Under the pieces are notes generated by a model, which saw nothing but the letters and a program-made list of their open reading frames with translations, made no database searches and was not told the origin of the DNA. The position numbers and the translations under genes are program-made. A stretch of DNA of 63,947 bases, counting the filler, from Perkinsus chesapeaki ATCC PRA-425 (taxonomy: Eukaryota; Protista; Perkinsozoa): NCBI GenBank assembly GCA_013115145.1. It is 10 parts of 10 records of this genome, joined end to end, with 100 filler letters (N's around TTAATTAATTAA, not from the genome) between each part and the next. Parts side by side here need not be neighbours in the genome. Positions count along the whole stretch, not along the records: positions 15,368 to 33,978 come from JAAPAO010000659.1; 9 more parts are not named here. One strand, written 5' to 3'. Positions 15,368 through 34,689 of this stretch are shown one piece after another. How positions within the stretch are numbered: position 1 is the first letter of the stretch; each line of letters opens with the position of its first letter.

Positions 15368-16953
15368 CTCGACGCACCAATTTGAAAGCTACCTTGAGAC
15401 TGAGCGAGTCTCCTAACCAGACCATCGGGAGTAGTATGGATGTAGTATTCGGCATAGCTGCATTTGTTATCCCGATAGCCAACCTGGCTGCAGTTGTGAC
15501 ACTGACCACCCACGCAGGCTTTATCACCAAATTTGTTGGCATCAAGCAGCATCACTGAGCTTACAGAGGTATCAACTAAGACTTGGATTAGTTGATCGTC
15601 TACCGATAGCATCGTAGTTAGATCATAATCGATAGTAAAAGTTGTTGAACCAACGCCAGCAAACTTTTCGTTGTCGCTCGCAGCCCGCCTGGCAAGATAC
15701 ATGTGGACCCCATGTTTGAACGTAAAAGTGACGAAATGATTTTGGAAGAATGGCCGCCCCATCACCAGATAGTCCACTTTGTTGATAATACCATTGTTAG
15801 ACGTTCCAAATAGCCAACGGCATTGCGTCGTGTCACCCACTTTACGGATATAATCCCTCGGCTGGATTAATATTTCTACAATATATCGTTTATCCTTATC
15901 AGTATATACCTGGAACATCCACTCAGGAAGCTTAGGTTCGATATCACAACGGAACCAGTAACCTTTCTTGGCGTCGAGTACATCGTACTCTTTCAGACGG
16001 TTGTCAAAGTGCTTGGCGTTGTAGTGCTTCAACCATTTGTTGGTGATAGGTATAAATATACGCTTCAGGGTGCGTTCATTAACGTATATGATAGGGGCGC
16101 TCGAGTCAAAGGCGACGACTGGGGCATTTTTCGAGACCACTGTCTTCCAGGGGGTTTCCTCTACTAGAATGGAACTCACCTGAGCCTTGTAGTGCCATTT
16201 ACGGAAGTCATTGTACAGGGGTCTGTCCAAGTACACTGCTAGGGAGTATTCATCAAGATATTCGGGTGGTTTATCCGCCGCCTTACCAAGAACCAGACTT
16301 CCTAAACTAGACCAAGGGTGAGGCGCTGGAATGAGCGAGATAACCCCATCAAGAGGTTCTTCACTATAAACAAACAATGTCTGTAAAACGGTGTCGTCAT
16401 CTTTATTGAGGCCTCCTCCAAGTCCAAGGGCACTACCGTGCAAGGGTTCGAGTCCACGACGTATATTATCTTCGTCATGCATGACACCATAATCAAGCCA
16501 TACATTACCAGAGCCCAGTGTAATAAAGGCGGGCCAGAAACTGGTGCGGTAGACGACATTGCGGGAGTCTGACCAACCGACAAAAATTTCCTTTTTGTAC
16601 AAGCATCCAAGTCCGCCAGCATAGCAGACATAGCATTCGTCACCGGAGCAAGTGCTTTTATTTGCACCGTTTACAAGCGGTCTGACTCTAAGTCGTGGAC
16701 CCCCGGTGTCGACATTAACGTAAAGCTTCTGACCGACTATTTCCAAGGGAACACGGAAATCATAAGTCATGGGAAGGACAAAGACATCTTCAGTTTCGTT
16801 TGCAGTTCGCCTTCCGTGGGCAGAGAGGCCGGATCCATCAGAATATGACCGAAGCGGCGACTCTTTAGTTTTGACAGTCGCACCCTCTTGACTAGAGCTG
16901 CAAAGAACCAACCAAACTGTCCGGATCACTGTAGTGGTTTGATGGAAAGCCAT
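15368..16953 (-). CDS. Secreted pepsin-like (A1) aspartic protease homolog with the start of a second protease unit; 3' truncated by gap
   Basis: Hydrophobic N-terminus from MAFHQ (ATG 16953). VNVDTGG and VAFDSSA lobes; VMGRPFFQNHFVTF (pepsin-like LG.PFL...Y..FD). VLVDTSVS plus a repeated C-x4-C-x2-C motif then begin a second unit. Intronless. Confidence 0.7.
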
Positions 16954-18663
16954 GAATGATAATGCCAGGAGATTCAAGAGCTTAGTGTAAAGCCTGTTGA
17001 AGGGAGCTGCGGCGGTGCTCGCGTGTAGGCTATGTACGCCCATCTCGCGTCACATGCTTCAGTGCCTCCATGGTTACCAAGCGCACTGGGTTGGGATCAT
17101 TCTGGGGGCCGGATATCAGGTATGTTAGTGACTAACTTAGGAATTCTGAGTTAGGATCACGTGGTGATCCGAGTACATCCGAGACTTCAACTATTAGAAG
17201 CAATCAGTTATCATAACCGTAGTAGCTAGCTGTTCTCGCGTACCTTAGTTAGCTGCAACCGTAGCTACAACCTTTGCTGTGTTCGTTACCCTCTGTACTT
17301 CTCTAAGAATAGAGCCCCGATGTAACAGAGGGCCTAAATAGGAGAGACGGTGGGAAAGTGGAGAGACAGCAGGCACTGTGCCTGTAATAAATGTGCCGTT
17401 CTTGCGTATTGTTCTGAACAATTTGTTTCCGTGTGGGCAATTCATGTTGTGCTAGCCGCAGGCTAACTGAGCAACTCCCGTAAGGCAAATCTTCCTGGCA
17501 GGTCCTCAATTGGAATGCTCTCTACAATGTTGCGGAGCAGCAGTTTTCAGTATTTTGCTCCGCCGGGCAGCAGCAGCGGTTTCTGGCCAGGCGTGGTTAG
17601 TACTTGCTTTTCTTATAGATATGCTACGCTCCAACAAAAACTTATAACGATGCTGCTGATTAAGTGAATCATTGAGTGAAATACTCTATGAAGTATTTCC
17701 TATCGATGCCTCACGACTCGATTCCACTCAGCAGTTACTCCGTTGCATAGCTTTCGTAACATGAACCCCTGCCTTCCGCACAGCTGTCTCATCCCACAGC
17801 CAATGATAACAGATATTCTACTGGGGGACCTCGATAACCGAAAACTGGCAACGAGCAATCTCGTCGCAGGAGCGGATAAAGTCTTTCTCGCCGCTCCATG
17901 GTTCTCTTTTTGTCCAGGACGAACGGTTTGCACTATATATTTTGTTAATGACTTGTCTCCATGCCGATTACTAGGCTTGCTTGTTATGTTCATTTTCTTG
18001 CATTTCATTATCGTCTTCTCGACTATCATTAAACACAATACATTCCCATAAGAAGAAGAAGAATAATGTTGGTGATAAGGAAATGATGTGTACAGTATAA
18101 AAACAGAGGCTATACAAGTAAGTTCCCTTCAACTCCTCCTCTTCACTGGACAACCTGAGCAACAATACAATGTGACATAATAGCTATAAAGACATTGAGA
18201 AAGCAACAACTTCATAAAACATCAAGTATCCAATGCGCACAGTCTGTGCGGCACAGATGCCGAAAAATGATCTAGAAGATATTAGTCGTTCCTCAAGTGC
18301 TCGAAGTGAATCCTTGGGTAATCATGAACGGGGATTTCAATAGAGAAGGAAACAGAAGGAAATTAGTTTTGGTTGCTAAGAGAATTTCCCGCTAAGTTTG
18401 CGCATCTCTAGATGGCGCGTGCTGTAGGGTATCATACTTGTCAATAACTACCGTATGCGGACCAGCCTAGTGCCTTTGACGGCTAAATTCAACCCATGCT
18501 GCCTCAAGGCTAATCTCAGTCTGGTTATAGCATCACACACTACTTGCTATTATGAATAGTAATTGTGCTACCGGACGCTCAGATAACACAGATGCCAAGA
18601 TGTGATCGGAATACCAGACAGGCTCACTCAGCGACCTCTTCACAAGGTTTCTTGTTCTTGTCA

Positions 18664-21600
18664 TTACCGTATATAAAGGAGGTAACCCAATTCAGCGCCT
18701 CTCCACACTTTAAACGTCTCAATAATAATCAGACACAAATCGGCCATAAAACTCCTTACTTTGGCTTCCACCCGTCGCTTCCCGTCAGCAACGCCGACAG
18801 CACTCGAATGAGCAGTCGGAAGTGTTGATGATGATGATGATGATGAGGTATTCGACTTCATGCTGTTAACCATGGTAACGAGGGCTTGATTGACTGGAGT
18901 AGGAACACCAAACTGTGAACCAAACCGAACCTGAAGAGATGAATGCGGACTGAATGGAAAGTCATATCGAGGAAAAATGCATCTGAGCAAACTCTTCTGG
19001 AAAACTTGCTAATTGTTGTATTTGTGCGGAAAACCTTTCCACCAGAACTCCTATCAGATCTCCGCAATAAGGCTAGTTAAACCCCTTGAACGTACCACTT
19101 GACCGTTGATGAAGGCTATCTCAGTGGGCCGTCCCAGGCGGACATCCCGAAGCATCGAGCTCACATTAGTCGCCGTAGAGTGTGCTACCGATGACCAAAG
19201 CTCATCCGAATACTCACAAGGCACCTGATGACACTTTCAATTCCACCCTGTCAGTTCGATGTTACCTCAACACCCATCACTTTAGCAACGTTGTATGCCT
19301 CGTGGGCTGCTGCAGAGGCAAGTGAATACCTGGAATTAAGATCAACGTTAACAAGTGATAATAGTAATTATTAGCCAATAACATTATTTAACAGTAAGAA
19401 GTAGATTTACGCGCCTTAAATTTGAAGCGATATGAAAAACTATTCTGCGATGAAATGGAAATGAATTTGAAGTACTTCATTTTTGAAAGTGTAATAAAAA
19501 ATGCTGAAAGTTGAGGAAATATTCCGCCTAGATGGTGGTAGTAATTCCGACTCACAGCTGTGAGCTCTCCAGAAGCTCTCCATTCAAGACGCCAAAAACA
19601 GCGGTGACCGGGTTGATTGCGGCGTTTATTATCATCTTATCCCAAACCTGAAATAATATAATAATTAATTACATCTCTAATCATCTCATTGCAGACTTTT
19701 CACAAAAAGTTTTTTTCGTAACCATAATTGGGAAAGTAACCAATTTATGTTTATTAAAAATAATAATTCAACGGAAATACGGTGAAAGAGAAGGGCACAA
19801 GTCGTCGAGGAAAAACGAAGCCGAGAACTCCCACTTGAGAGTTATTTACTAACAAAATTATACCGCACCATCGCGCACTGCTTACCATCTGTTGAGCTTC
19901 ATCGGTGTCTTTGGCATCATCCACTCTGCATGGTATCTTGGCATCCTCAAAACACGATGACAGAAGTCCGGCGAGGGGATCCTCGGGAATACTATCTTCA
20001 CTTGTGGATTTAGGCGGTATCAACTAACAAGTTGAAATAAATGGCTCGCAAAACAAGTTACGTGATTCCACATCCGATTCGCAGATTCGACAACTCACAA
20101 TTTTCTATACGAACAGATAATCATCGAATTGAACGATTATCGAAAATTGAGAAACTGGTACTTTACAACATTTAAACCAAAATTAAAGTGTTGCCGCCGC
20201 CGCCCCACTCAGTGCGGTTAATCGATTACTGTATAGTTAATGCCCCCTCCAAAGCTGAAGACCTTATATCCTTACGAGTGTTGAAAATAATAAAATATAA
20301 ACTACTCGATTTAAAGTATAATTATACAGAATGTGTATATCTCTCATCATACTGATGATCGGACCAGGCCAATCGGTAGGCCGAGTATGCCTCTAATCGT
20401 GACATTGGTTTTCCTATTCAACGACTACCCCCCAATTGCCGTCCTTTTAAATATGCTTCATAGGCTCACCTTCATCCAAGCATCTGTTCCAGGTAAGATA
20501 TTAACTTCGAGGACACCAGGCTTGGGGAGATTGCAACCGATAGAAGTCACAGCCTGCATCAAGATGAACGATACTAATACAGCTTAGTCCTCCTTTCCAA
20601 TCCATTGACTGCCCAATCATAAGAAAATACTGTTCGAAGGGGATTGCCTAGGACTTGCCCAACATGTTGAATAATTCACAGACCAGTCCACTGCACGCCA
20701 ACTTACTTGCCAAATGTTGTTACTAACAACTGAGAGAGCGTCAACTGATCCGATACCATTTTGGATCTGAAAGTGAAGAGGCATAATGCACAATAATCGA
20801 TCACGTGATCGATTATCTACTATTAGCTAATCTACTTGTCACCCCAAATTCTCGCGATACAACAGGAAAAGACTCCCCAAAGCCCTAACTCACATCAAAA
20901 ACATTTTAACCGACGAACTTGGTCTAAGAAAAGCGAACTCTAAAAATCGAAACTGAAATGATATTTCCAGCAAAGCATCATCCGGGCAACATAACTCCAT
21001 ATCGGTCTTACACTTAGAACAGGTGCTCCATCTGCCAGCAGTCCAGATAACAGTTTCTTAACAATAACCGGGTCTTCAAGCTGCCACGCCTTCGATGCTA
21101 CCACTACCAGCTCTGGTGTGGTGCCACCAAACGCCGACAAACAATCCGATACCTGACGGATGCGGAATTCTACAAGGGGAAAGTAGACTCAGTATTGGAC
21201 CAGATCTCTATTTGTAATGTACTAGTAGTAACTAAATATTTATGATAGTACTAATGATATACATTGTAAAAAGTAAATAGTAATTAATAAGAAAGATAAG
21301 TTTTGTAAATTAATAATATAATATAGTAGTAGACGCAGTAAGCCTTGGTGAGAGTATCCTGAAGAATTGAAACTAGGAATTTGAAAAGAGTGTGGCGACT
21401 CGGATGGAGGAAATGTTAACTTCAAGACCTTCAACAGTACGGGAAGATCTGTATCAATCAACATAACTTCCCAAAACCTTCCGTGGACACTTCCGGTGCG
21501 GTCGAGATTCCCCACAGGATGATTTTCCGCAAACATCTCCTCATCGCATTTCTGGAGACATGTATCGAATTCAACAAGATGGTCATACGTCATGAACGTA

Positions 21601-24600
21601 TAAAGTTGCGAAATGGAGTTTGGTGAGATGAGGATACGGCGAGCAACGTGAGAACGATTTAATCCAAATGGTGATTCACGACCATGTGAACCTTTTGGAG
21701 CAAAAGTAAATGACATCTCTGAAAGATTCCCCGGAAACTTACATTATGAACAACCCGGAAGTTGGTCGATGAAGAGTTGCCTTCCAGAGCAGGCAAAACT
21801 CTTCCTTGACTGTCAACACATTCCAAACCAGATGAGCTCATCGCATCAGCATGCGAGTGAGGACCAGTTATCAGCACAACATCGGGAACCTGAAAAATAG
21901 GAAAATACGGTATGAACAGTTTTGGAAAAGAAGCCGATCCCAGTGGGATCATTTGCCAAGTTTTTCACCACTCGCATGCCCGACGACCAACCGACAGCGG
22001 TCGGTTTTTCTTCGAGATCATATATCTGCTCCAGCCCGTGTCTCAGACCTTCCCTCTCGGATTGCGCTGACCTTCGCCCAACACAGCTAAATAAACCCCA
22101 TCGGCCAACACTGCATTTCAAAGCTTTCCATTCCATCCTTCATACCGAACTTCCCTCCAACACCCTTACTTTCTTCGATAATGCCTTCGCGAAAAACGTC
22201 CCCATCGCTCCACCACCAACAACTGCAACTCTAGTTGGATTCGAGCTCATCCTCGCCACCGGCTTGTCGCATTCAGCTGTAGAATCTGACCAACGAAGTA
22301 AAACAGATTTGATAAGTTCTCATTACTCTCAGTCTCGGACTCTCCACTATTGCCTTTGATCTCATTGACCAACATACTGTATTCAATCGGCTTCATTTTT
22401 GTATAAGTCTCGGGGCCCGGAAACTGCCCAGATTTAACCTCATCGACGTACCTGTTGACCCCAGCGTAATGATAAAGTACATATATAGAAATATTGGGAT
22501 AATATTGGTAAAGATGATATATATAATAAATACATCCCCACCTGATCCAGTCTAACGATTCCCTATAATTACTACTGCCATCATTAATGATTCTCCCAGG
22601 AACATTTTCCCACTGAGTCTCTCCTTCACTATTAACTTTCTATCATTGCCGAAGACGAATAGCAAATTGCGGAAAAGGAAAAATATTTTCCGCAGAATTA
22701 ATTATTGCAATATTTTCCAAGCATTTCCTTCCGCAAAAGAATTGATTTTTCATCTGTTCAGACCCTGACCCAAAAATCGATACCAGAACAAATTCAAAAA
22801 ATAGCAAAGCGGATACGAAATTCCAAAATAAACGGTATGCAAGCCTAAACGAACTTCTTTCAGAAAAGCCTTTTTCTCCTCCTCCGCCTCATCCCTACCA
22901 CTTACCGCATCACACCGATGTTCATCAACTCTCGGAGATTCACAAACTGCTTTGCCAACTTAGGCGCCCTAGGGGTCAACCCAAGAAGATCGTGGACAAC
23001 CAGCACTTGGCCAGAGGTATCTGGCGTTGAGGAAATACAAGATTGCAAGATTTAACATCACTACCAGGACCGGAACCGATGCCGATAGTCGGTACAGTAA
23101 GAGCTTCTGTGACCAATCGGGCAACTTCACCAGGGACGCATTCGAGGACCTTGGAGGGAGTATTAAAGGCAACGCGATGGCAAGGTTTGTGATGACTGAT
23201 AACAACCGTGCAACGACTTTAGCTATTTAAAATGAAGCAGCGCTTCTTGCCAAGATGGCTCACACTATCGACAGTGGGGTAAGGGTTTCTACAGTCCTCT
23301 TGATTTCAATAATTTCGCATGCTTGAATAAACATACTATTCTAATACGGCATTCCAAGCGATCTCAGAGCATGCCACCACTGACATCAAAATGGCTCTGT
23401 TATATAAACACCCTCAATCACCCAAGCAAGTCCGCACCAGAGATTCATGCCGGTAGTTTAACGAATAAAGTTGAGTGGCATTGAATTCAATCCCCTCTCC
23501 CCCATCTACCATCATTATGCATCCTGCCTTCTCTAGCTCTTTGGCGAACTCAATCATGTGGGCTGCTGCCGAGGCGGCTTTGCCTTGGATCTGATAACGA
23601 CATAATAATATTTAAACAAAGTGCAAATTATAACATAATCGTGACCACTGAAACAAAACCCTTCGCAGGCCGTATGTGAGTAAGTGAGGGGGAGACCGTT
23701 GCTGGAGCTACTTAGAGGAAGGATTCATTGGAAGCGTTGATAAGCATCTCGTAGCTGGAGCGATAGTTACAATAAATATTAGATGAATTCCATAGACTAA
23801 TAAAATGGAAGCTCCACTAAAGTGAAACCCTTTTTTAGATACCCCAACCGGGATTCGAACCCACGACCTACCCGATACCCTCCCATTTGAACATGACTTT
23901 GCGGTGTTAAACCGATATGACCAACTACACCTATACCAGCTGCTGTCATTCGACGGACCAACTCCGTCGAGAATTCTTGGGAGCTCCCCGGACACTAATA
24001 AAGTTAGTTTCTCAAGTTCGAGCAAGTGATCCTCACCTCAAGCTTGACTATGTCAGCATTACCCTCTTTGATGAACCTGATAAAATGAGCCTTGTTGCAG
24101 GATTCCAACCGACTGTATGTGTTCGCTTTGGGAAAGGGGCTAGTTCCTAATATATTGCGATATAATTAAAATAACATGTTTATTAATGCATTCGACAATA
24201 CCCCTCCCTTTGAGGAAAATGCAGGTTTAGTTCAGTAATAGGTCACGACTATCCCAAAACAGCTAAACGTGACGTATTAAAAAATATTAATGTGAATCAG
24301 TCTTCTACCTTGCTCCATTTTTCACGCCATCTTCATAGGTCAAGAAGGACCCAAAAGGCATATCACCGATGATCATCGGCCGGTGATTCACCAACCCACG
24401 CCTGACTGCTTGAGTGTGGAGAATCTGATAGAATTTTAGGAAAATAACTTCCGTTGAATTCTCTACCATCGCGTCCATCGAAATAGGGACGGTCGAATCG
24501 AACCCGTGAACGACGTTCGAAACAGAGTCTCCCACTAAAAGGAGATCTACACCGCACTCCTCAGCGATGCCTAAAATGCAATGTGCCGGGATCGAACCAT

Positions 24601-25358
24601 GGACCTTCATATCACCAGCTGTCATTGCGTCGTAGGCCGTCATCATCGTTATCTTCCGGCCTTGTCGGTGAAATTTATTGAGTTGAGTTAAACTCACTTT
24701 CTTCGGCAGTTTCATTTTCTTATCTGAAAAACGTCAACACTTTCGAAAGTGACGCTTTTAAAGAAAGATCGGACGATAGACCACCAAAAAATACCCAACG
24801 CTGAATTTCAGACTCGACTTCCGGAACTGGAAGGTCAATAAAGCCACCCTGCTCGGGTGTAATGAAGATGCAATCCAATCAACGAGTTTGTTACATTAGC
24901 AACAGTAATATAACTCCGGCCGATTTTTCAGTAGGGGGAGTTTCAATTTCAAGTACATCTGTGTAAGACTGAGAGATATTTCGACCCTTTTAGGAATGCA
25001 ATAACGTCCCACTTTTATTACCATGTGACGAAGCCTTGGCGCTCCCGTACGGCGACGCAGATGAGAACATCCTTGCAGGCCTGTGACTGAAAAAATAGAA
25101 ATGACCTTGAATTTGGTAGACCGCAGGCAAGTGGGTCGATTGGGTTTGTGAGGGAACTGGTTAAAATACATTCATCAATATCAGACCCGAACAGAAAAAA
25201 TTTTAAAATAGTTTTTTTTTCGGAAAAATTTAGGAATTTTTCGTATTATGATTTTCTTACTTGATTGTTGCAGAGCGAGTAGCTGACGTTCGCAAAGCGG
25301 ATGAAAGGACTTGTTGACAGGCAGATGTGGCTCGATGGAGGGGCACAAGAGAAGACAT
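18664..25358 (-). CDS. panB-panE: Bifunctional ketopantoate hydroxymethyltransferase / ketopantoate reductase (PanB-PanE fusion), many exons, mitochondrial-type presequence
   Basis: PanB exons: [58 protein letters not shown]...[30 protein letters not shown]. These join in frame across a 50-nt intron (22277-22326) to PanE exons: [46 protein letters not shown]...[16 protein letters not shown]. Exact 5' and 3' ends are inferred. Confidence 0.85.
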
Positions 25359-26477
25359 ACGGGGGGGGCAAGCAACTGGGGGAGGAGGGGGGGGTTAAGA
25401 TGGTAATAATCTTATTATTAGTTATATTATGAATAGTCAGAGATGGGTGTGAAGGAGTAGGGATTTATCATTAATAACATATTTCCTATCGAGTTTATCA
25501 TTATATTCCATCCCTTATAATAATAACATTTATTATACACTCATCACCTATATAAGGTATCGAGGAGACTATATAAAAGATGATATCATTGGACATTTAA
25601 TATTAACGATTATATTAATAACATATCTCCTATCAAGTTTACCATTATACCGAATGCAATAACATTGATTATAGTGCCATCTTTGCAGTAACATTACCCC
25701 TTCTCGGTGTCTGGAATTTTCCCGATTTTTTCCAAATATTACATATTTTGCGTCCACTATATAACTCAAGATTATAAAGAGTATAACAAATAGTACATCA
25801 ACTCCAAACATAACGAAATATCCCACCGGCCCAGTTGCACCCCAGCCGTCGACGGCGTGCGCTAAAGCAAGGAAAAAGGCGCGCGCCCAAAAATGGCAAC
25901 TGCGCAGAATCTTGGAGATGGTTTTCGGCAAAGGTTACCCCCGCGCGAGAAGAAAAATACTTATCGTTTGCAGATGAGGGAGCGAAATACCAATTCCTCC
26001 TAAGCTCCTTAGAAATTTGTATTCTCCAAGCTTTTCGGTGCCTCGAAAAACCTAAAAACTTCACAAAAAGATTTACAGTAATTGACACGAGTTCTCATTT
26101 TAGGTTGCTGCGGAGCTGCTGAATTTCAGAACATTTTCATTGAAACACAGCCTCTTTGTTATATGTCAACTTAAATGAAAGTTACATTGACAAGGCAGGA
26201 GCTAGTCTTAGCGGTGATAATTGATGATTGGCATAGTACCTATGCAGAGCTAACGGCGGCCTTAACGGGGCTCATTACAGGCAATATGCTCCCTAGCATC
26301 ACGAAGAGGACTATCCTTCCCCAACCTACCCAAAGGAATCAAAGTCATATTGATGGTTAATTATTGCTCATTTGTAATATTATTATAGCTAAATATTAAT
26401 CTGCTCTTTATCAGGTCATCGGATACAGTGTATAATGGCCTTGCCACACGGCGATGCCCTTTTCCTTATTAACCAGC

Positions 26478-26794
26478 AAGTGAAGGTCCATCGAATTAAG
26501 CTTGGATTGACCGCCAATGGCCGGCCAAAGGAATCGTCCGTGATTGGAAATCTTCAGGTTGTATTAGGATGATAATGTATAGATTATATATATCATCTTT
26601 ACCGTTATATTATATAAATATACCATATTATCTCCATCTTTATCATCCAATTCGGATGCCGATATACTTTTCACCAAGCAACCGGCAGAAAATGAACAAG
26701 CTAAGATTGAGGAAGAGGCGAAGTGTAATCCGCTTCCAAATGAGGAACGGGAAATCGCTGAAGTGTGGGGAGATGAGGAAGATTGTAATGATTG
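26478..26794 (+). pseudogene. Internally deleted duplicate of the hypothetical gene at about 30.7-32.2 kb
   Basis: Two blocks (VKxHRIKLGLTANGRP and KIEEEAKCxPLxNEEREIAEVWGDEE) match 30864-30912 and 32063-32230. They are about 130 bp apart here and about 1150 bp apart there. Confidence 0.5.
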
Positions 26795-28091
26795 ATATAC
26801 TGTTCGGTGGTTAAAGTATATAATGGCCTTGTCACACTGAGGTGGTGTCCCTTCCCTTATTAATCTTTCCTGACAAGTATCACCTCATTGTGTTAGTGTT
26901 GCCATCAATCTCTGGGAGGAATGAGTTTCATTATTCGAGTTGTTAATTGTGAAAGCTACACTAAGTCAGATAGACCATACGAGAATCTTTGCCGAGATAG
27001 GCTTGCATTAATCTTCACCGAATATAATTTTGCATTGAGCGGGCAGCTGTCGATTTGGAAATGGCCAGGGCCCAATCAATAAGGACTGACAAAGTCCGAC
27101 ACTGACCATGCTGGTGAGGACCGGATGAGGTGTCCCAACACTGAGCATGCTGGCCACTAAAATCGAAGATCTTCGGCTCTCTCAGCATTTTATTAGGCTA
27201 CTTGGAATGACAGATTTTCCGAAACAGGTGTGTTAGATTTCCCCTCCTCCGCAATGGCAGTGCCTCCGACGGCCAGCACTCTCATGCCGAGTTCGATAGG
27301 CTCCTTACCATCGACCATCTATGACATCGACATATCGGCCTCACGGTATGACATACATAGTAACCAGGTATATACGAGAGCGCATTCTATTATAGAGGAG
27401 GAGGAGGAGGAGGAGCAAAATGGTGAGTCCAGACAAAGCAATCGATGCCGTTATTTTAATTTCGAAATTTCCTATTTTTTTAATTGACAGGATGCCTCAT
27501 GCCAGTTGATTCTATTTGTACTTTAAGAAGATGCACAAATGCTTATTCAGATACGACCGAGAGAGAACTGCTACGAGATGGAATAGAAATAAGTAAGTGG
27601 TGATAGATGGGTCATTCCTACAAATAATGTACTGACTGGGCAAAAGGAATGCATTTAGATCGACCACGGGCAATTCCTTTGGCGAGTGTGTATGGCTATT
27701 ATATATAGGATTCATCATCGCTAGCCATCATTAACCAATCACCCGGCATCTTAAAGGAAGGCAATACCACCTCAATGGTTACTAGTGGGAGGGCTTCTGT
27801 ATTATACTTTATTCATTCGACCTTGTGCCTTGATTGAATGTGCTCATCGAGGGTTGGAAATTGTTCCCCAGTGCGAAGAGTTGGCGGCAATCTCGATAGT
27901 AAATTCTTAACGACACTTAGACAGCAAATACATCTCTCTTGAGAGCGTTTGTCGAACCCTATGATCAAGCTGTATCCAGCGGCCTGGAGTGGTTTAGTGC
28001 CCCGACCAAGACGCTTTTCTGGAAATAGGGCTTTTTCGAAACGCTCAACACATTTCAAGACCATTTCCTCCTGCTCCATTTCTCGGTCTCA

Positions 28092-28300
28092 GATTCCTCT
28101 GAGTTGGGCTATTACTGCCGAGCATGTCTGGAGTCGCTGGCGAGTCTGTGGGAGGCCCGACAGCATGTCGGATTGCAGACCCATAAGGATGCCATGAGGG
28201 CCTATATTGATATGACTGACGACAGCAGCAGTAGTAGTGATGATGATGACCCATACGGGCCGAGAGGGAGATCTCCAGAGCGATCGGAGAGCAGAGGATC
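28092..28300 (+). CDS. Exon encoding a U1/matrin-type C2H2 zinc finger (gene limits unknown)
   Basis: YYCRACLESLASLWEARQHVGLQTHK fits Y-x-C-x2-C-x12-H-x5-H-K, followed by an acidic/RS-like low-complexity tail. Confidence 0.45.
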
Positions 28301-30698
28301 GATTATGAGTGGTAGGTTAGGTTGGTTACGGATCACGAGCCTCGACTTGTGGATCGAACTTGCATCGACTGCATTCCTATTTCTGGGGAGTTCGTAAGAT
28401 TCTTTATTGCTCATCGTTACGTACATGCTTACTTTTCCTGTTTCAAGCTCCTCTCGATTCCTAAACTGCCGATGCATATTGATTTCTTATGGGAAGTTGC
28501 TGTTATGTAATCTCGTTTCATCCGTCCCCATCAATTCTTCGAGCACTCCGTCAGTATTATGAACAGCAATGATTCCAAGAGCTATCGCTTTCAACTTCCC
28601 CTCAATCGTTAGCATCAGCATCATCTCCCAATCCCAATTTTACAAATTGCTGGTGCGCTTTTGCCTCATCAAAAGGGGTGCTAGGATCGTCGATTCGCGA
28701 GTCCAGAATTTATGCAATGAAAAGTATCAGCTACTTCTATTTTGCAATCAAGAGCAAATCTTCAAAGAGACAAAATACGTATTACCAGCAAAATGGCGGA
28801 ATGATAAGCACCTCAGGGCAACACTCTCCGAGTCGAGACTGCCAGCGACACTCGCAATCAACATCCCGTTGGTTGTTCTCAGCTACCTTGAAGATTCTGC
28901 TGTCTGTTGGATATTTTCTTTCTCAGAGATTCCCACTTCCTCCCGACCTTCCCGACCATCCTTCCCTCCACCCGCCTCATATAGTTCATTCGGCACCACC
29001 AGCACCAATAGAGTCTCACTTACTCCACGGCAGCATTCTTCGAGGTAAGGTTACTTTTACTAGTTTGTCGATGAGGTCCGAATGCTCATCACTGAATCAC
29101 TTTCCCCTCAGGCCGAGTTCGGCGCGAGTTCGGCTAACTCCAGCGTCGAGGTAAGATTCCCCGGGTTGCCCTCTGTGAAGGTTGTCTATATTCCAGCCCA
29201 TTTTCCTCGGAGTAGCTTGTGAGTTATTGGGCTTTAGATTTTGGCCGTTTCTATGATTCTTTCTGGTTCCTTGACCGACTCGGTCACTCCATTCCCTCTT
29301 ACCATCTTGTCGCTGTCAGATCTGAAGCCTCCATGAGCAGCATGAGTTCTAACTTTGCATCCTTTGGGGGAGTTGACACGCCACCGACAAGCCGGCTCAG
29401 TTCTCAATCCATCACAGATGCTCATTATCGACAGCTTAGGTGGGTTAACAATTCAGGAAAGCATGCGGGCATTTATTTGCAATCGTCTAGATAAAAACTG
29501 AGTTCACTTTTGACATCCTATTTTTATATAGCTTTAGTTCTTCCCCATCACCCCCTATCTGTAGGTCTCCTTCTCACTCGAAGTTTCGGTATCACTTCAC
29601 CAATAATCACTATATTACTCCACCCACAGCATTACCCTTCCATCTCTCTCAGTGGCCCGCCCTCCCCTCCCTCCTATCGATTCCTCGGAGCTGTTCACAC
29701 CGATCGAACCATCGGTCGAACGCCAGATGAATTTCTGGCAAGTCGTCGAGGGTTAACACCCAACTCGTCTGACTCGCGAAGGTCAGTGAAATCAACCTTG
29801 GAGAATCTTGACTTGCTTTTCAGGGACTTTTGCCAGTCTTGGCGATATGGCGATGATGAAGAGAGGCCTTGGCGGGCACAGAAACGATTGCGAGAATGTG
29901 ATGAGGAGAAGGCAGTCATATTGAAGGCTAAGATTCCAAGGGAGACTCCAGTGTAGGGGGGAGGAAAGGGAAAGTTAATAGAATTAATTGGCCATTAGTA
30001 GTAGCAGGAAAATGGAATACACGGCCTAGCGTTCGAGATGAGAAAGGGATTGGCATTTTTTATGTTTGAGGTACGATGCTGAGGTTTATCTTGGCCAACC
30101 AGGGGAGAAGTACGGTGGAGAATGGTGCGAGGATGCCGGATGTTGGCTCACCGAAGTTCAGCCAATTTGTGTTGTCGTTGGCGGCACTGTTATTGAGGAG
30201 CAGCCTGATGAAGAGATAGGTAACTGAGCGAAGACACTTGACGGGAAGATTTCGGTCAAAATTTTTCCCTGGATCAAAAAAGTTCGCAATAACGAATTGC
30301 TAGAGTATCGTGGATTCAATCAGTATCCCGCAGATTGAGAAAGCGCTTGCCTTCATTTTGGTAACATCTATCACTCGGTTGCCTGCTAGCAGTCTGTGAA
30401 AGTGGTCCCCCTTGAATTTCAGTGACATCGGTGATGCCAGTCAAACAGCCCTCGCAAGCCAGTGTGGCATCGAATCAGTTTAGGAAGTTCTGAAATTGGA
30501 ATTTTTCCGAATTCTGGAATTTTTCCTTTATCAATTTTTGGGTCGTATTCGTTTGTCGTTGAAATGCTTCCCTAAGATTTATTACATTTCAGTTATCCTC
30601 GATACTTCCATTCGATGCGAGATTTGTAAGCTTTATGTTGACACTCATGATGCGAGTAAGAAGATTCCCCGAGGTTAATTTCGGTGACCATCTCGTTC

Positions 30699-32246
30699 AG
30701 GCGAAGAAGAAGTCATCAGAATTAAATATGATCATCAATCTAATCCGGTGAGACTTGCAACTCTTTTTATCTTGTATATCGCTACGACAGGCCCACCTTG
30801 TCCGTCGGGAAAAAATGCGCAAAAGGTTTGGCATCTGTGAGGCGTTTAATCGAGAAATCGATAAAGTGAAGGCCCATCGAATTAAGCTTGGATTGACCGC
30901 CAATGGCCGGCCGCGACAGTAAGGAGGCGAGGGTAGGACAAACCTTTTTTGTAGGACAACGGCTTCGGCTCTCAAACACTGAGAACTCTGGGCAAGTACC
31001 TTTGCACGAGAGAGCTCTTCTCCAACTACACAACTTCGCACTGGACAGATTTACGCCGAAATGAGGTCTTCGTGCAGTCGGTCCTCGCCAACTGTGAGAA
31101 CTCGACCAATTAGCCAGTCTCGATTATCTTTTTGCCGATAGTACTTTCATAATACCATTTCCGCTTTTCAGAACTGGACTGAAAGATGTGTGGTTTCATT
31201 TTTCGGAGGAGGGAACTTCCTTTGTCCGATTCCCTTTATCCGTGCAAGTATGTCTGTGAGTATCTTACGGTTTCAGTTTTTGGTGTACTTGTTGCGATGC
31301 ATATCTACAGTCACCAGAAGCAGTTCATTTCCATATCGGCATCAACGCTCATCGGGTAAGTCAATCGAAGACCAAAGGGGAGGGTTTTGTTCTCGCTGTC
31401 CGGTGGGCAAGTGATCATTTTATATGCTAATATCGATTCTGGTGTTTTCTGTCACCAAGCTCGATTGATTTGGCTGTGAAAATTGGTATCTTACTTCTGT
31501 TGATGGGTCACGCTCCGAGCTTGGATATGTTCCCCTCAGTCCAATCTGGAGTATCATGATTGGTGCTTTGAAGTCGGTCAAGATCCCAGGCTCTACTACA
31601 ACTCCGGCTGGCAGTGAGAAAGTCGTTCGAAGGTCATTCGGCAGTGTTGGTCTCAGTTTCCCAGTCAAAGAGGAACGGAAAGAAGAAGGGAAAGTGTTGC
31701 CGAAGTCAGACGAGATGAAGCTCGAAGATATCTCTTATTTGACCAAGGGGGATACTGCCGGTGCAAACTACTGTAAGTCATTGTTGCCCCAATTTTTGTC
31801 ACTCCACAAAAGGGGGACAGGCTCATTGTGTGCGTTGTCCCATTCTAAATGCTCGACAAACTCTGTAATCTAATAGTTATTTGTCTCTTCTTCAGGTTGC
31901 CGTTGTAATGTGACGCTGACATCTCCTTGGGAGATTCAGAAGCATCTTCGAACCAAAACTCATCGAGAGAGGTAGACTGGAATTCATTCGATGGTTTTGG
32001 ATTTTCCACAGGTCGGCTGTCGGACAGCAGGTGGACGAGCGGCCGCCGTTAATCGAACTGGAGGCCGATATACTTTTCACCAAGCAACCGACAGAAAAGG
32101 AAGGAGAAACGGAAACGACAGAAAAGGAAGGAGAAACGGAAACGACAGAAGTTAAGATTGAGGAAGAGGCGAAGTGTGATCCGCTTTCGAATGAGGAACG
32201 GGAAATCGCTGAAGTGTGGGGAGATGAGGAAAATTCAGGAGGGTGA
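30699..32246 (+). CDS. Hypothetical multi-exon protein, C-terminal part
   Basis: GT-AG-bounded open segments (AHLVRREKMRKRFGICEAFNREIDKVKAHR...; ...KIEEEAKCDPLSNEEREIAEVWGDEENSGG*). Conserved in the paralog at 26.5 kb; contains a 27-nt TEKEGETET duplication. Confidence 0.35.
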
Positions 32247-32551
32247 GAGAATTCGCTTGCAGGATTTCAGCTGGAAATGCATCTTACAGTTGTCCTGCGT
32301 CGGCGGCGGTTGAGTTTGATAGGATGGTTGCAGCGATCATCAACGGTGAAAGCATCGAGCAATCATTTTGAACGTTGCGAAGATGAGTAGGAGCCTCTCA
32401 GTTGGCCGCCGTTGATGTTTTACATGATGTGATTGTTTCTTACTATTTATTCTGTTGTGTGTTCTAGTGGGCGTGTGACACATTGACAAACTCGGCTAAC
32501 ACAGTCAACCGGAAACCTTGTTAAAAAGCTGCCATCGGCGAGTTAAGATTC

Positions 32552-32983
32552 TCAGTAGCTTTCCTCGATATCAGCATCCCATTCCCCAAGGCACGCCTGA
32601 AACCCAAGAACGTAGCCATTGTGTTGCATAACCAATTCATCGGACTCGTTGTAGTATTTTATACGAGTGAAGTCATCCTTATTGAAGAAGAACTTGTCAT
32701 CAACATCATCAGTAAAAATCTTAACGGTTTTTTCCTCGGGGAGATATTCATAAGTGGCATGCGAGAAGCCTCGCCTACGCCTCCACCAAAGCCCGAAGCA
32801 GAAGAAGTCATATCGAGCATAGGAAACATCGGTCATGTTCCAGAAAGTGATATCATGACGTACTCTAGGTTTCAGCAACGAACCAGTTGTTGGTGTCGAG
32901 CAGTAGCGTTTGGGGAAGTAGTCTTGTAGATCCGTCGAAGAGGAGAAAGCCAATACGGCGACAATGGCGATGAGTTTAAACAT
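32552..32983 (-). CDS. Small secreted orphan protein, intronless
   Basis: MFKLIAIVAVLAFSSS signal peptide at ATG 32983; 143-aa aromatic-rich mature region with no recognised domain. Confidence 0.55.
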   Translation of the reverse strand: MFKLIAIVAVLAFSSSTDLQDYFPKRYCSTPTTGSLLKPRVRHDITFWNMTDVSYARYDFFCFGLWWRRRRGFSHATYEYLPEEKTVKIFTDDVDDKFFFNKDDFTRIKYYNESDELVMQHNGYVLGFQACLGEWDADIEESY

Positions 32984-34689
32984 GAGGGAGGGTAATGTAG
33001 AGAGAGTTGGCGATGAGCGAAGGAGAGGTGATGTGACGCCTCTAGGTGTGACGCCGTACGCGCGACTTGAAGGCTTACTCGCGGGGAGGCGCATTTCGAG
33101 TTCGTATGGTGTTGGCCTGCCTGATGGATGCCTTCCCATTAAAGAGCGTCATGTGAGGCGTGGCTAGCGATTCGTGCCACTTTGCAATCGGCGGAAAGGT
33201 CCTAGTTGCCCCTCCTAAGGATTCGATTGGATCGGTTGAATACGTACGGCCGAGACGCGGAGACGGCCTGTTCTAGAACTGTGAGCAGTTCTGATGATGG
33301 GAGACAAGAAAAGGTGCGGAGCACGACTTGTTGTGTGTAGAGTAAATAAGCGTAGTGCAGGGAGAGTTTGTAACTTCTTAGTTGTGCATTGTGTATTTTG
33401 CGCGAACGCGCCCCTGGGCGAGCGAGGTTCCTGATGGGAATCCTTCCGGCCCCGACTGAAAACAGTGAAGGTGCGCCTTTACAACAACTAAAGAGCTTGT
33501 GGTGTTTACTGCTAGTTTACACACTGAGGCTCATCTCAGCTTGGAGCGTCCGACGAGGAAATCTGACTTCCATTTTGTCCCTCCCGAAAAGATAGCGATT
33601 TACATAACGCATATATGCAAACGCTCGACTGATCGATTATCTCACTCGAAACTCGTCACCTGGACTCTTTTCTTCCTGTCGATCAAACCTACGACTGCTA
33701 GTGGGCTTCACCCGCGCCCAGCAGGCACACACCAGATAACTATATCCAACCCGACAGAATGTATAATATGTCATATACACACACATCGTACGACCTTACA
33801 CGCCAGCCGCCGATACGAGCCGTGACAGAGAGTCGTAGAGGTGCGTGGAATGTTTTGCACTTTTCACTAGGTCTTGTCGGGGCAACGTTCTATTGAACGA
33901 CCTTCTGTCCAGATCCCGCACTATAAAGGATCTGGAAATCTCGATCGCCCAGGACAGCGCGAAACGGCTCGGAGATCTNNNNNNNNNNNNNNNNNNNNNN
34001 NNNNNNNNNNNNNNNNNNNNNNTTAATTAATTAANNNNNNNNNNNNNNNNNNNNNNNNNNNNNNNNNNNNNNNNNNNNCGATTTTCTGAAGTTCTACCGG
34101 TCCGGGAGTCCCGGACCTGGTCTCGTAAAGATTCAGAAATACTTCTGATCTCTGTGGTTCATTGCGCAAAATAAGAAACATTGCGTCGCAAGTATGGACA
34201 AGTCGTTTGTAGTGTTACTCCAAAGTCTTATGAACTTAGTCATGAAAGAGCTAGGTTGTAGCTGTCGTATGCAGCTTGCATCGGGCCACTTGCCGCGGAA
34301 ATTGCAGGGAGGTCTGTGTCGTGTTGTTAATTCTAGTGTTTGACTAAAACAATTAGGACGACCAATTTAGTAGCTTAAGGTGTGTCTACCTTTGCCGGCC
34401 CCTTCATCGTGAACGCGATTCTTGAGATTGGGAGCTGCCGAGCAGTTACGGAGCAATGAGCAAGAAGATATAGAGCGAGCAAGACTATGTCGGAGCCTAC
34501 ATATTTTGAGTACTCATCGATAATTAGAAAAAAACCCTCAGCATCACAGAACATCAATCTCGGTGTTGAGTCATCCGGAGCTCAGTAAGCGTAAATATAA
34601 AAATTATGGGTGGGCTGAATATTGAATATATGGAATCGATACTGGATGTTGGGATGGACGGGGTTGGGGGGCGGGTTATGGATGGGATT

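Follow-up and report, generated by a model that had tools for sequence, protein, structure and literature searches.

Coccidian parasites encode the enzymes of the first two steps of pantothenate (vitamin B5) synthesis, PanB (KPHMT) and PanE (KPR), as one bifunctional KPHMT-KPR polypeptide, and the same fusion occurs in Perkinsus marinus (PMC8717973). In chromerids, a trifunctional open reading frame (ORF) includes, in addition, pantoate-beta-alanine ligase (PBAL, PanC) (PMC8717973), the PanB-PanE-PanC examples from the literature being Cvel_3471 and Vbra_16581. The Toxoplasma KPHMT-KPR of about 144 kDa is expressed as one protein and co-localises with a mitochondrial marker, and for P. marinus a supplementary table lists PMAR019327 as a bifunctional KPHMT-KPR together with two PBAL genes (PMC8764084). 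In E. coli, on the other hand, PanB and PanE are separate proteins encoded by separate genes which possess neither presequence nor linker nor introns. Here we analyse the gene FOL47_009438 of Perkinsus chesapeaki, a parasite of oysters and clams, which is contained in a stretch of 63,947 nucleotides (nt; filler between its ten parts included). This entire stretch is referred to as the window, and all positions are given in window coordinates.

FOL47_009438 is an intact, intron-rich PanB-PanE fusion gene. As in PMAR019327, with which it was compared by way of the literature listing, and as in Toxoplasma gondii TGME49_257050, it is the bifunctional PanB-PanE architecture of a myzozoan parasite that is found here, although the P. 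chesapeaki protein, at about 85 kDa, is much smaller than its Toxoplasma counterpart, which is apparently inactive in cultured tachyzoites. The gene is real, but it is ordinary and already present in the public annotation. The same fusion is in print for P. marinus, coccidia (Toxoplasma) and chromerids, and the evolutionary inference drawn in a preliminary description of this DNA, namely that the fusion, if homologous, predates the split between perkinsids and apicomplexans, has likewise been published (PMC8717973; PMC8764084).

Results

Domain composition and catalytic residues

The piece of the window from 15368 to 33978 (18,611 nt) is, base for base, the reverse complement of P. chesapeaki contig JAAPAO010000659.1 (assembly GCA_013115145.1). 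GenBank places FOL47_009438 on the minus strand, its coding sequence running from 25358 to 18624 and specifying a product of 785 amino acids (aa), designated P0221 in our comparison. UniRef labels this product 3-methyl-2-oxobutanoate hydroxymethyltransferase, and its precomputed Pfam record comprises Pantoate_transf (PanB) as well as ApbA and ApbA_C (PanE). By script, P0221 can be threaded exactly through the DNA in 23 exons separated by 22 introns, all 22 of which show GT-AG borders. Their lengths are bimodally distributed, with 8 of the 22 measuring 41-52 nt and the other 14 measuring 153-590 nt.

Stop-free pieces and exons were searched singly, whole-protein scans used the database protein P0221, and exon joins were made locally as translations of about 300 nt around the respective junction. 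Searched in this way, the DNA itself yields Pfam Pantoate_transf matches in five separate stop-free pieces from 24733 to 22905, a weak ApbA match over the Rossmann motif in 22143-22319 and ApbA_C matches at 19555-19668 and 19057-19236. P0221 as a whole matches the Pfam families PF02548 (4.9e-96, 321.6 bits, profile positions 1-258 of 259), PF02558 (3.5e-18, 66.1 bits) and PF08546 (2.9e-32, 112.1 bits). Among the NCBIfam models it passes the panB equivalog TIGR00222 with 280.1 bits (cut-off 207.55) and the subfamily model apbA_panE, TIGR00745, with 189 bits (cut-off 141.35), while no PanE equivalog model of this collection reaches its cut-off with P0221. The two passed cut-offs and the identically fused proteins of P. 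olseni support the claim of the preliminary description that both enzymes are joined in one polypeptide. For a specificity of the PanE part towards ketopantoate, as opposed to some other 2-oxo acid, the fusion to PanB would provide contextual support.

The catalytic residues can be read directly from the alignments with E. coli PanB and PanE, which have the same folds. In a phmmer alignment with E. coli PanB (1m3u_A), residues identical to Asp45, Asp84, Lys112, Glu114, His136 and Glu181 are found, of which we take Asp45, Asp84, Lys112, Glu114 and Glu181 to have metal-site or catalytic roles. Alignments with E. coli PanE (1ks9) reveal identical residues at the positions of Lys176 and Asn180 (exon 19) and of Ser244 and Glu256 (exon 21); here Lys176 and Glu256, in addition to Asn98, Asn180 and Ser244, are presumably the residues involved in catalysis. 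The GxGxxG nucleotide-binding motif of PanE is present as GGGAMG in exon 12.

Related fusion proteins

A search of the full library with the PanB exon block as query gave the relatives used for comparison. The nearest of them are six proteins from P. olseni, 747-753 aa long, which without exception display the same fused architecture, KAF4724184 and its alleles agreeing with the P. chesapeaki protein in the order presequence, PanB, linker, PanE. Identity between the P. olseni proteins and that of P. chesapeaki amounts to 74-76% overall and to 89% in the PanB domain. An intron is found at the same linker position in both species, whereas sequence and length of the linker differ. Compared to P. 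olseni, the public P. chesapeaki model contains an extra exon of 24 aa and a different C-terminal tail. In the public model of one P. olseni allele, P0210 (L006), a 5-aa insertion and two substitutions are present at the boundary of exons 7 and 8, which probably reflects a choice of splice site by the predictor and not a real difference.

Beyond Perkinsus, the library matches include a PanB-PanE-PanC protein of 1014 aa (P0060), several PanB-PanC fusions and a further PanB-PanE protein (P0114); P0060 and P0114 are known as fusions from their protein sequences. A PanB tree was built quickly from 43 rows, which did not include the near-duplicates P0205, P0209-P0212, P0215, P0219 and P0220 and contained no coccidian sequence. 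In it, the trifunctional P0060 forms the sister of Perkinsus (SH-aLRT, the Shimodaira-Hasegawa-like approximate likelihood ratio test, 91); the PanB-PanC fusions come next and P0114 is placed elsewhere. P0060, which is of the chromerid type, thus provides the PanB nearest to that of Perkinsus outside the genus. It shows the same order of PanB, linker and PanE as the P. chesapeaki protein, followed by pantoate-beta-alanine ligase as a third domain.

P0060 and the P. chesapeaki protein also have in common a short helix-like extension of the pattern M..xE..xL...L after the FPGP motif of PanB (residues 322-345 of P0221). It is likewise present in P0058 from P. olseni and in P0114 and, as judged by eye, in the PanB-PanC fusions P0064, P0084 and P0096, which suggests a common C-terminal extension of eukaryotic PanB irrespective of the downstream partner.

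The linker junction and its probable intron

PanB and PanE meet in a linker encoded by the end of exon 11 (22327..22451, minus strand) and the beginning of exon 12 (22170..22285, minus strand). Exon 11, placed by threading of P0221 and by alignment with 1m3u, opens at 22451 with the 11-residue terminal PanB motif noted in the preliminary description and comprises the end of PanB (a stretch of 14 residues) as well as the first half of the linker. Exon 12 contributes the second half, an internal ATG at 22250 and the ten-residue Rossmann motif of PanE, which was found where it had been reported, within the weak ApbA match. In the public model the intron between both exons extends over 41 nt (22286..22326, minus strand, GTAATG...GGTCAG) and is thus one of the short introns of the gene (41-52 nt). 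The preliminary description had assigned 50 nt to it, a length still within this range (22326-22277, GTAATG...CTACAG). While this longer intron has proper borders and does join the two frames, the public model ends it at 22286; the donor GTAATG at 22326 is thus faced by two acceptors, one at 22286 and one, ending CTACAG, at 22277. Since the two acceptors are 9 nt apart, either of them links PanB with exon 12 without loss of frame, and the intervening 9 nt (22277..22285, minus strand), exonic in the public and intronic in the 50-nt model, leave the frame intact in either case.

If the intron is retained, the PanB frame ends, as had been predicted, at a TGA which overlaps ATG 22250. The same overlap occurs in two P. 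olseni alleles. As a conserved feature it was rejected, given that the remaining three of the five P. olseni alleles have an earlier stop in the unspliced frame, inside the interval.

For a closer view of the junction, five P. olseni genomic loci, drawn from four assemblies, were compared as alleles. All five loci fetched contain a GT...AG interval at the same place of the linker, with lengths of 46, 46, 46, 47 and 53 nt. Within this interval, 31 of 55 alignment columns (56%) are variable among the five alleles, whereas in the 29 nt between the acceptor and the first ATG the alleles differ at only two positions, each of them the third of a codon in the fused frame (Fisher p = 5e-6). The exon parts flanking the junction differ by one 3-nt indel and by substitutions which mainly fall on third positions. 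The splice dinucleotides GT and AG, for their part, are retained in all six sequences, i.e. in P. chesapeaki and the five P. olseni alleles. Judged by its high variability and free length the interval evolves as non-coding sequence, and the stretch ahead of the internal ATG, in which third-position changes alone are found, evolves as coding sequence in the fused frame. Comparison of these sequences thus offers good support, short of proof, for splicing at the junction and for the fusion.

Exon structure

The other exons, all located on the minus strand, are given in the order of the coding sequence. Exon 1 (25261..25358) begins with ATG 25358, proposed as the start in the preliminary description and used as such by the public annotation; it codes for the first stretch of a presequence rich in S, A, R and T, matches P0221 exactly after splicing and agrees with P. 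olseni in the start MSSL. The rest of the presequence and an internal ATG (25070) are found in exon 2 (25022..25086), whose join to exon 3 is confirmed by the transcript-derived protein P0001 from MMETSP, described below. With exon 3 (24616..24723; Pfam PF02548) the PanB domain starts. It is followed by a 45-nt intron, and exon 4 (24467..24570), which harbours the VGDS motif with the equivalent of E. coli Asp45, by one of 42 nt, both of which are missing from P0001. The GDMPFG motif (Asp84 equivalent) of exon 5 (24309..24424) and the VKLE motif (Lys112 and Glu114 equivalents) of exon 6 (24037..24076) were located by threading of P0221 and by alignment with 1m3u. Exon 7 (23872..23994), which carries a further PanB motif, and exon 8 (23510..23590) are defined by Pfam match and threading, exon 7 also by the 1m3u alignment. 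Exon 9 (23065..23149; Pfam match, 1m3u alignment) contains the LECVP motif, with the equivalent of Glu181, and GIGSGP, and exon 10 (22906..23020; Pfam match, threading, alignment) contains GQVLVVHD.

On the PanE side, the N-terminal domain continues in exon 13 (21743..21889), 70% identical to P. olseni, and in exon 14 (21012..21152), which like exon 16 (20470..20553) was placed by threading of P0221 and comparison with P. olseni. Between the latter two, exon 15 (20707..20766) bears the QNG motif, the residues Q490, N491 and G492 of which are invariant in alignment A3. Exon 18 (19886..20023; threading, comparison with P. olseni) represents a variable segment between the PanE domains. The C-terminal domain comprises exon 19 (19556..19647), with a 12-residue motif that includes the equivalents of Lys176 and Asn180, exon 20 (19266..19329; threading, comparison with P. 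olseni) and exon 21 (19096..19224), with SSMLRD and TEIAFING (Ser244 and Glu256 equivalents); exons 19 and 21 are backed by the Pfam ApbA_C matches and the 1ks9 alignment. All later PanE motifs named in the preliminary description, i.e. QNG in exon 15, the 12-residue motif in exon 19 and one of 14 residues in exon 21, are accordingly in place. With exon 22 (18760..18930) the PanE fold is completed, and a tail rich in Ser follows.

Two exons of the public model call for comment. Exon 17 (20353..20424), which encodes 24 aa, has an acceptor without pyrimidine tract and can be skipped with the frame kept. No counterpart of it was found in the six P. olseni proteins, in P0060 or, by blastn, in the DNA of the P. 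olseni loci. It is probably a prediction artefact, in which case the true protein would have 761 aa encoded by 22 exons. Exon 23 (18624..18707) comprises tail and stop and is not conserved in P. olseni. The alternative is to read through the preceding 52-nt intron to a stop at 18664-18666. That stop, with which the preliminary description had let the gene end, does exist; the public model, however, splices the 52 nt and its coding sequence therefore extends to 18624.

Within two introns of the gene, on its coding strand, lie exact matches to GGTTCGAWYCC, a sequence resembling a tRNA T-arm or RNA polymerase III B-box (chance expectation 0.06 per whole window). They are situated at 24588-24598 in the 45-nt intron 3 and at 23851-23861 at the start of intron 7, both on the minus strand. 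ARAGORN and Rfam scans found no tRNA or RNA family in the piece, and these matches are therefore not regarded as tRNA genes.

The N-terminus and a transcript-derived protein

Among the first 62 residues of P0221 there are 10 R+K, 1 D+E and 26 S+T+A, and the N-terminus in P. olseni is of the same character. This composition fits a mitochondrial presequence, and by analogy with Toxoplasma a mitochondrial location of the Perkinsus fusion may be predicted as probable.

A Perkinsus protein derived from an MMETSP transcript, P0001 (Transcript_4761, 147 aa), resembles this locus more closely than it does P. olseni. The in-frame short introns of 45 and 42 nt inside 24733-24308 are both missing from it, and exon 2 is joined to exon 3, so that its sequence confirms the removal of introns 2, 3 and 4.

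Surroundings of the gene

An intronless ORF of at least 558 aa (15370-17043, minus strand) runs off the edge of the piece and is annotated as a product of 520 aa. Neither for this ORF nor for one of 195 aa at 32555-33139 was a Pfam match obtained. Direct repeats of four families (87 nt, 94%; 49 nt, 98%; 43 nt, 93%; 27 nt) connect the regions 26478-26784 and 30864-32235 on the plus strand at a spacing of about 5.4 kb, that of the 49-nt pair being about 4.4 kb. One set of copies is located between FOL47_009438 and the next gene, the other inside a neighbouring annotated gene for 654 aa, an arrangement which looks like a partial segmental duplication.

Discussion

In our judgement it is very probable that a fused PanB-PanE product is the main form made from FOL47_009438. 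Its mRNA would most likely be translated into one polypeptide of about 760-785 aa, beginning with a basic, hydroxylated presequence. This would be followed by a complete PanB/KPHMT, predicted to be a Mg-dependent TIM-barrel which forms ketopantoate from alpha-ketoisovalerate and methylene-tetrahydrofolate. Via a linker of about 45 aa, the coding sequence of which would be split by the short spliceosomal intron, a complete NADPH-dependent PanE/KPR would be attached, reducing ketopantoate to pantoate. The two sequential reactions would thus take place on one protein, which is probably mitochondrial like its Toxoplasma counterpart, and pantoate may then be passed to a pantoate-beta-alanine ligase with a gene of its own. 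What is directly seen are the domains with their catalytic residues, the exon structure and, in P. olseni, the conservation of the fused architecture; from these we infer enzyme activity, as we infer localisation from the presequence and the Toxoplasma analogy.

Several observations weigh against this reading. A word search with the stop-free piece 22250-22639 returned no transcript-derived protein across the junction, and one with residues 300-460 of P. olseni P0058 returned only P0058 and P0221, the latter search giving neither a long transcript-derived protein nor a P. marinus protein of comparable length. As no transcript spanning the junction was found, it is the comparison of alleles from which splicing at this place is deduced. 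Moreover, both Perkinsus annotations apparently stem from one project, as indicated by serial locus tags and accessions, and probably from one pipeline, so that the gene models of P. chesapeaki and P. olseni are not independent. Met is kept just in front of the Rossmann motif in Perkinsus (P. chesapeaki has one, P. olseni three), whereas the distant PanE-containing fusions P0060 and P0114 have none there. Both P. marinus and P. chesapeaki are documented to use spliced-leader trans-splicing (PMC2868825), which, with an AG about 30 nt upstream of ATG 22250, could serve a separate PanE mRNA. Finally, P0001, the only transcript protein found, has an ORF which starts near the Met of exon 2 and not in exon 1, for which reason exon 1 and the full presequence are not confirmed by transcript, and after exon 5 (FLTYE motif) it continues with 28 unrelated residues for which the window has no coding sequence. 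P0001 may stem from a chimeric or mis-spliced transcript; alternatively, exon 2 may be a possible beginning of the mRNA, for example where a spliced leader is added, and the presequence would then be shorter.

An alternative reading is that of two adjacent cistrons, with 22326-22277 retained, PanB terminated at the TGA and PanE produced from ATG 22250 through its own spliced-leader mRNA or through re-initiation. Such an arrangement is favoured by the TGA/ATG overlap, seen in the window as well as in two P. olseni alleles, by the Met which both species retain where the PanE domain starts, by the spliced leaders of P. chesapeaki (PMC2868825) and by the lack of a junction-covering transcript among the word-search matches. 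We nevertheless consider it unlikely, as three of the five P. olseni alleles lack the stop/start overlap, and GT and AG are kept in six of six sequences amid an interval that is otherwise 56% variable. Furthermore, the 29 nt preceding the ATG change in the manner of coding sequence when read in the fused frame, the interval is about as long as the ordinary short introns of this gene, distant relatives share the fusion architecture and Toxoplasma makes a full-length fusion protein (PMC8764084). The same evidence, together with the two usable acceptors 9 nt apart, might be taken to indicate a mixture, in which the fused enzyme occurs alongside separate PanB and PanE because the junction intron is retained in a regulated manner or because cis- and trans-splicing compete at its acceptor. 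This possibility, for which there is no direct evidence, appears very slight to us: the consequences of retention differ between alleles, which makes a selected mechanism less likely. We attach a practically negligible probability to a decaying or mis-assembled locus in which gene prediction merely simulates a fusion. The public-model exon at 20424-20353, which lacks counterparts in relatives, would agree with it, yet all domains are of full length, all catalytic residues are intact and 22 of 22 introns obey GT-AG; substitutions between alleles are, in addition, concentrated at third codon positions, and the same architecture recurs in five P. olseni loci from four assemblies.

A more speculative role for the junction intron is that of a switch. 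Spliced, it would lead to a bifunctional mitochondrial enzyme; retained, or supplied with a spliced leader at the acceptor, it would lead to mitochondrial PanB plus a PanE devoid of presequence and started from the conserved Met. We hold this to be highly unlikely; were it true, Perkinsus would stand midway on the path from separate genes to a fixed fusion.

The gene indicates that the first two steps of pantothenate synthesis are retained in P. chesapeaki, as they are in the other two Perkinsus species, P. marinus and P. olseni. The synthesis of pantothenate is expected to be absent from the mollusc hosts, as it is from animals, which makes the pathway a conceivable drug target. The gene also marks the spread of PanB fusions among myzozoans, to which it adds confirmation rather than new knowledge.

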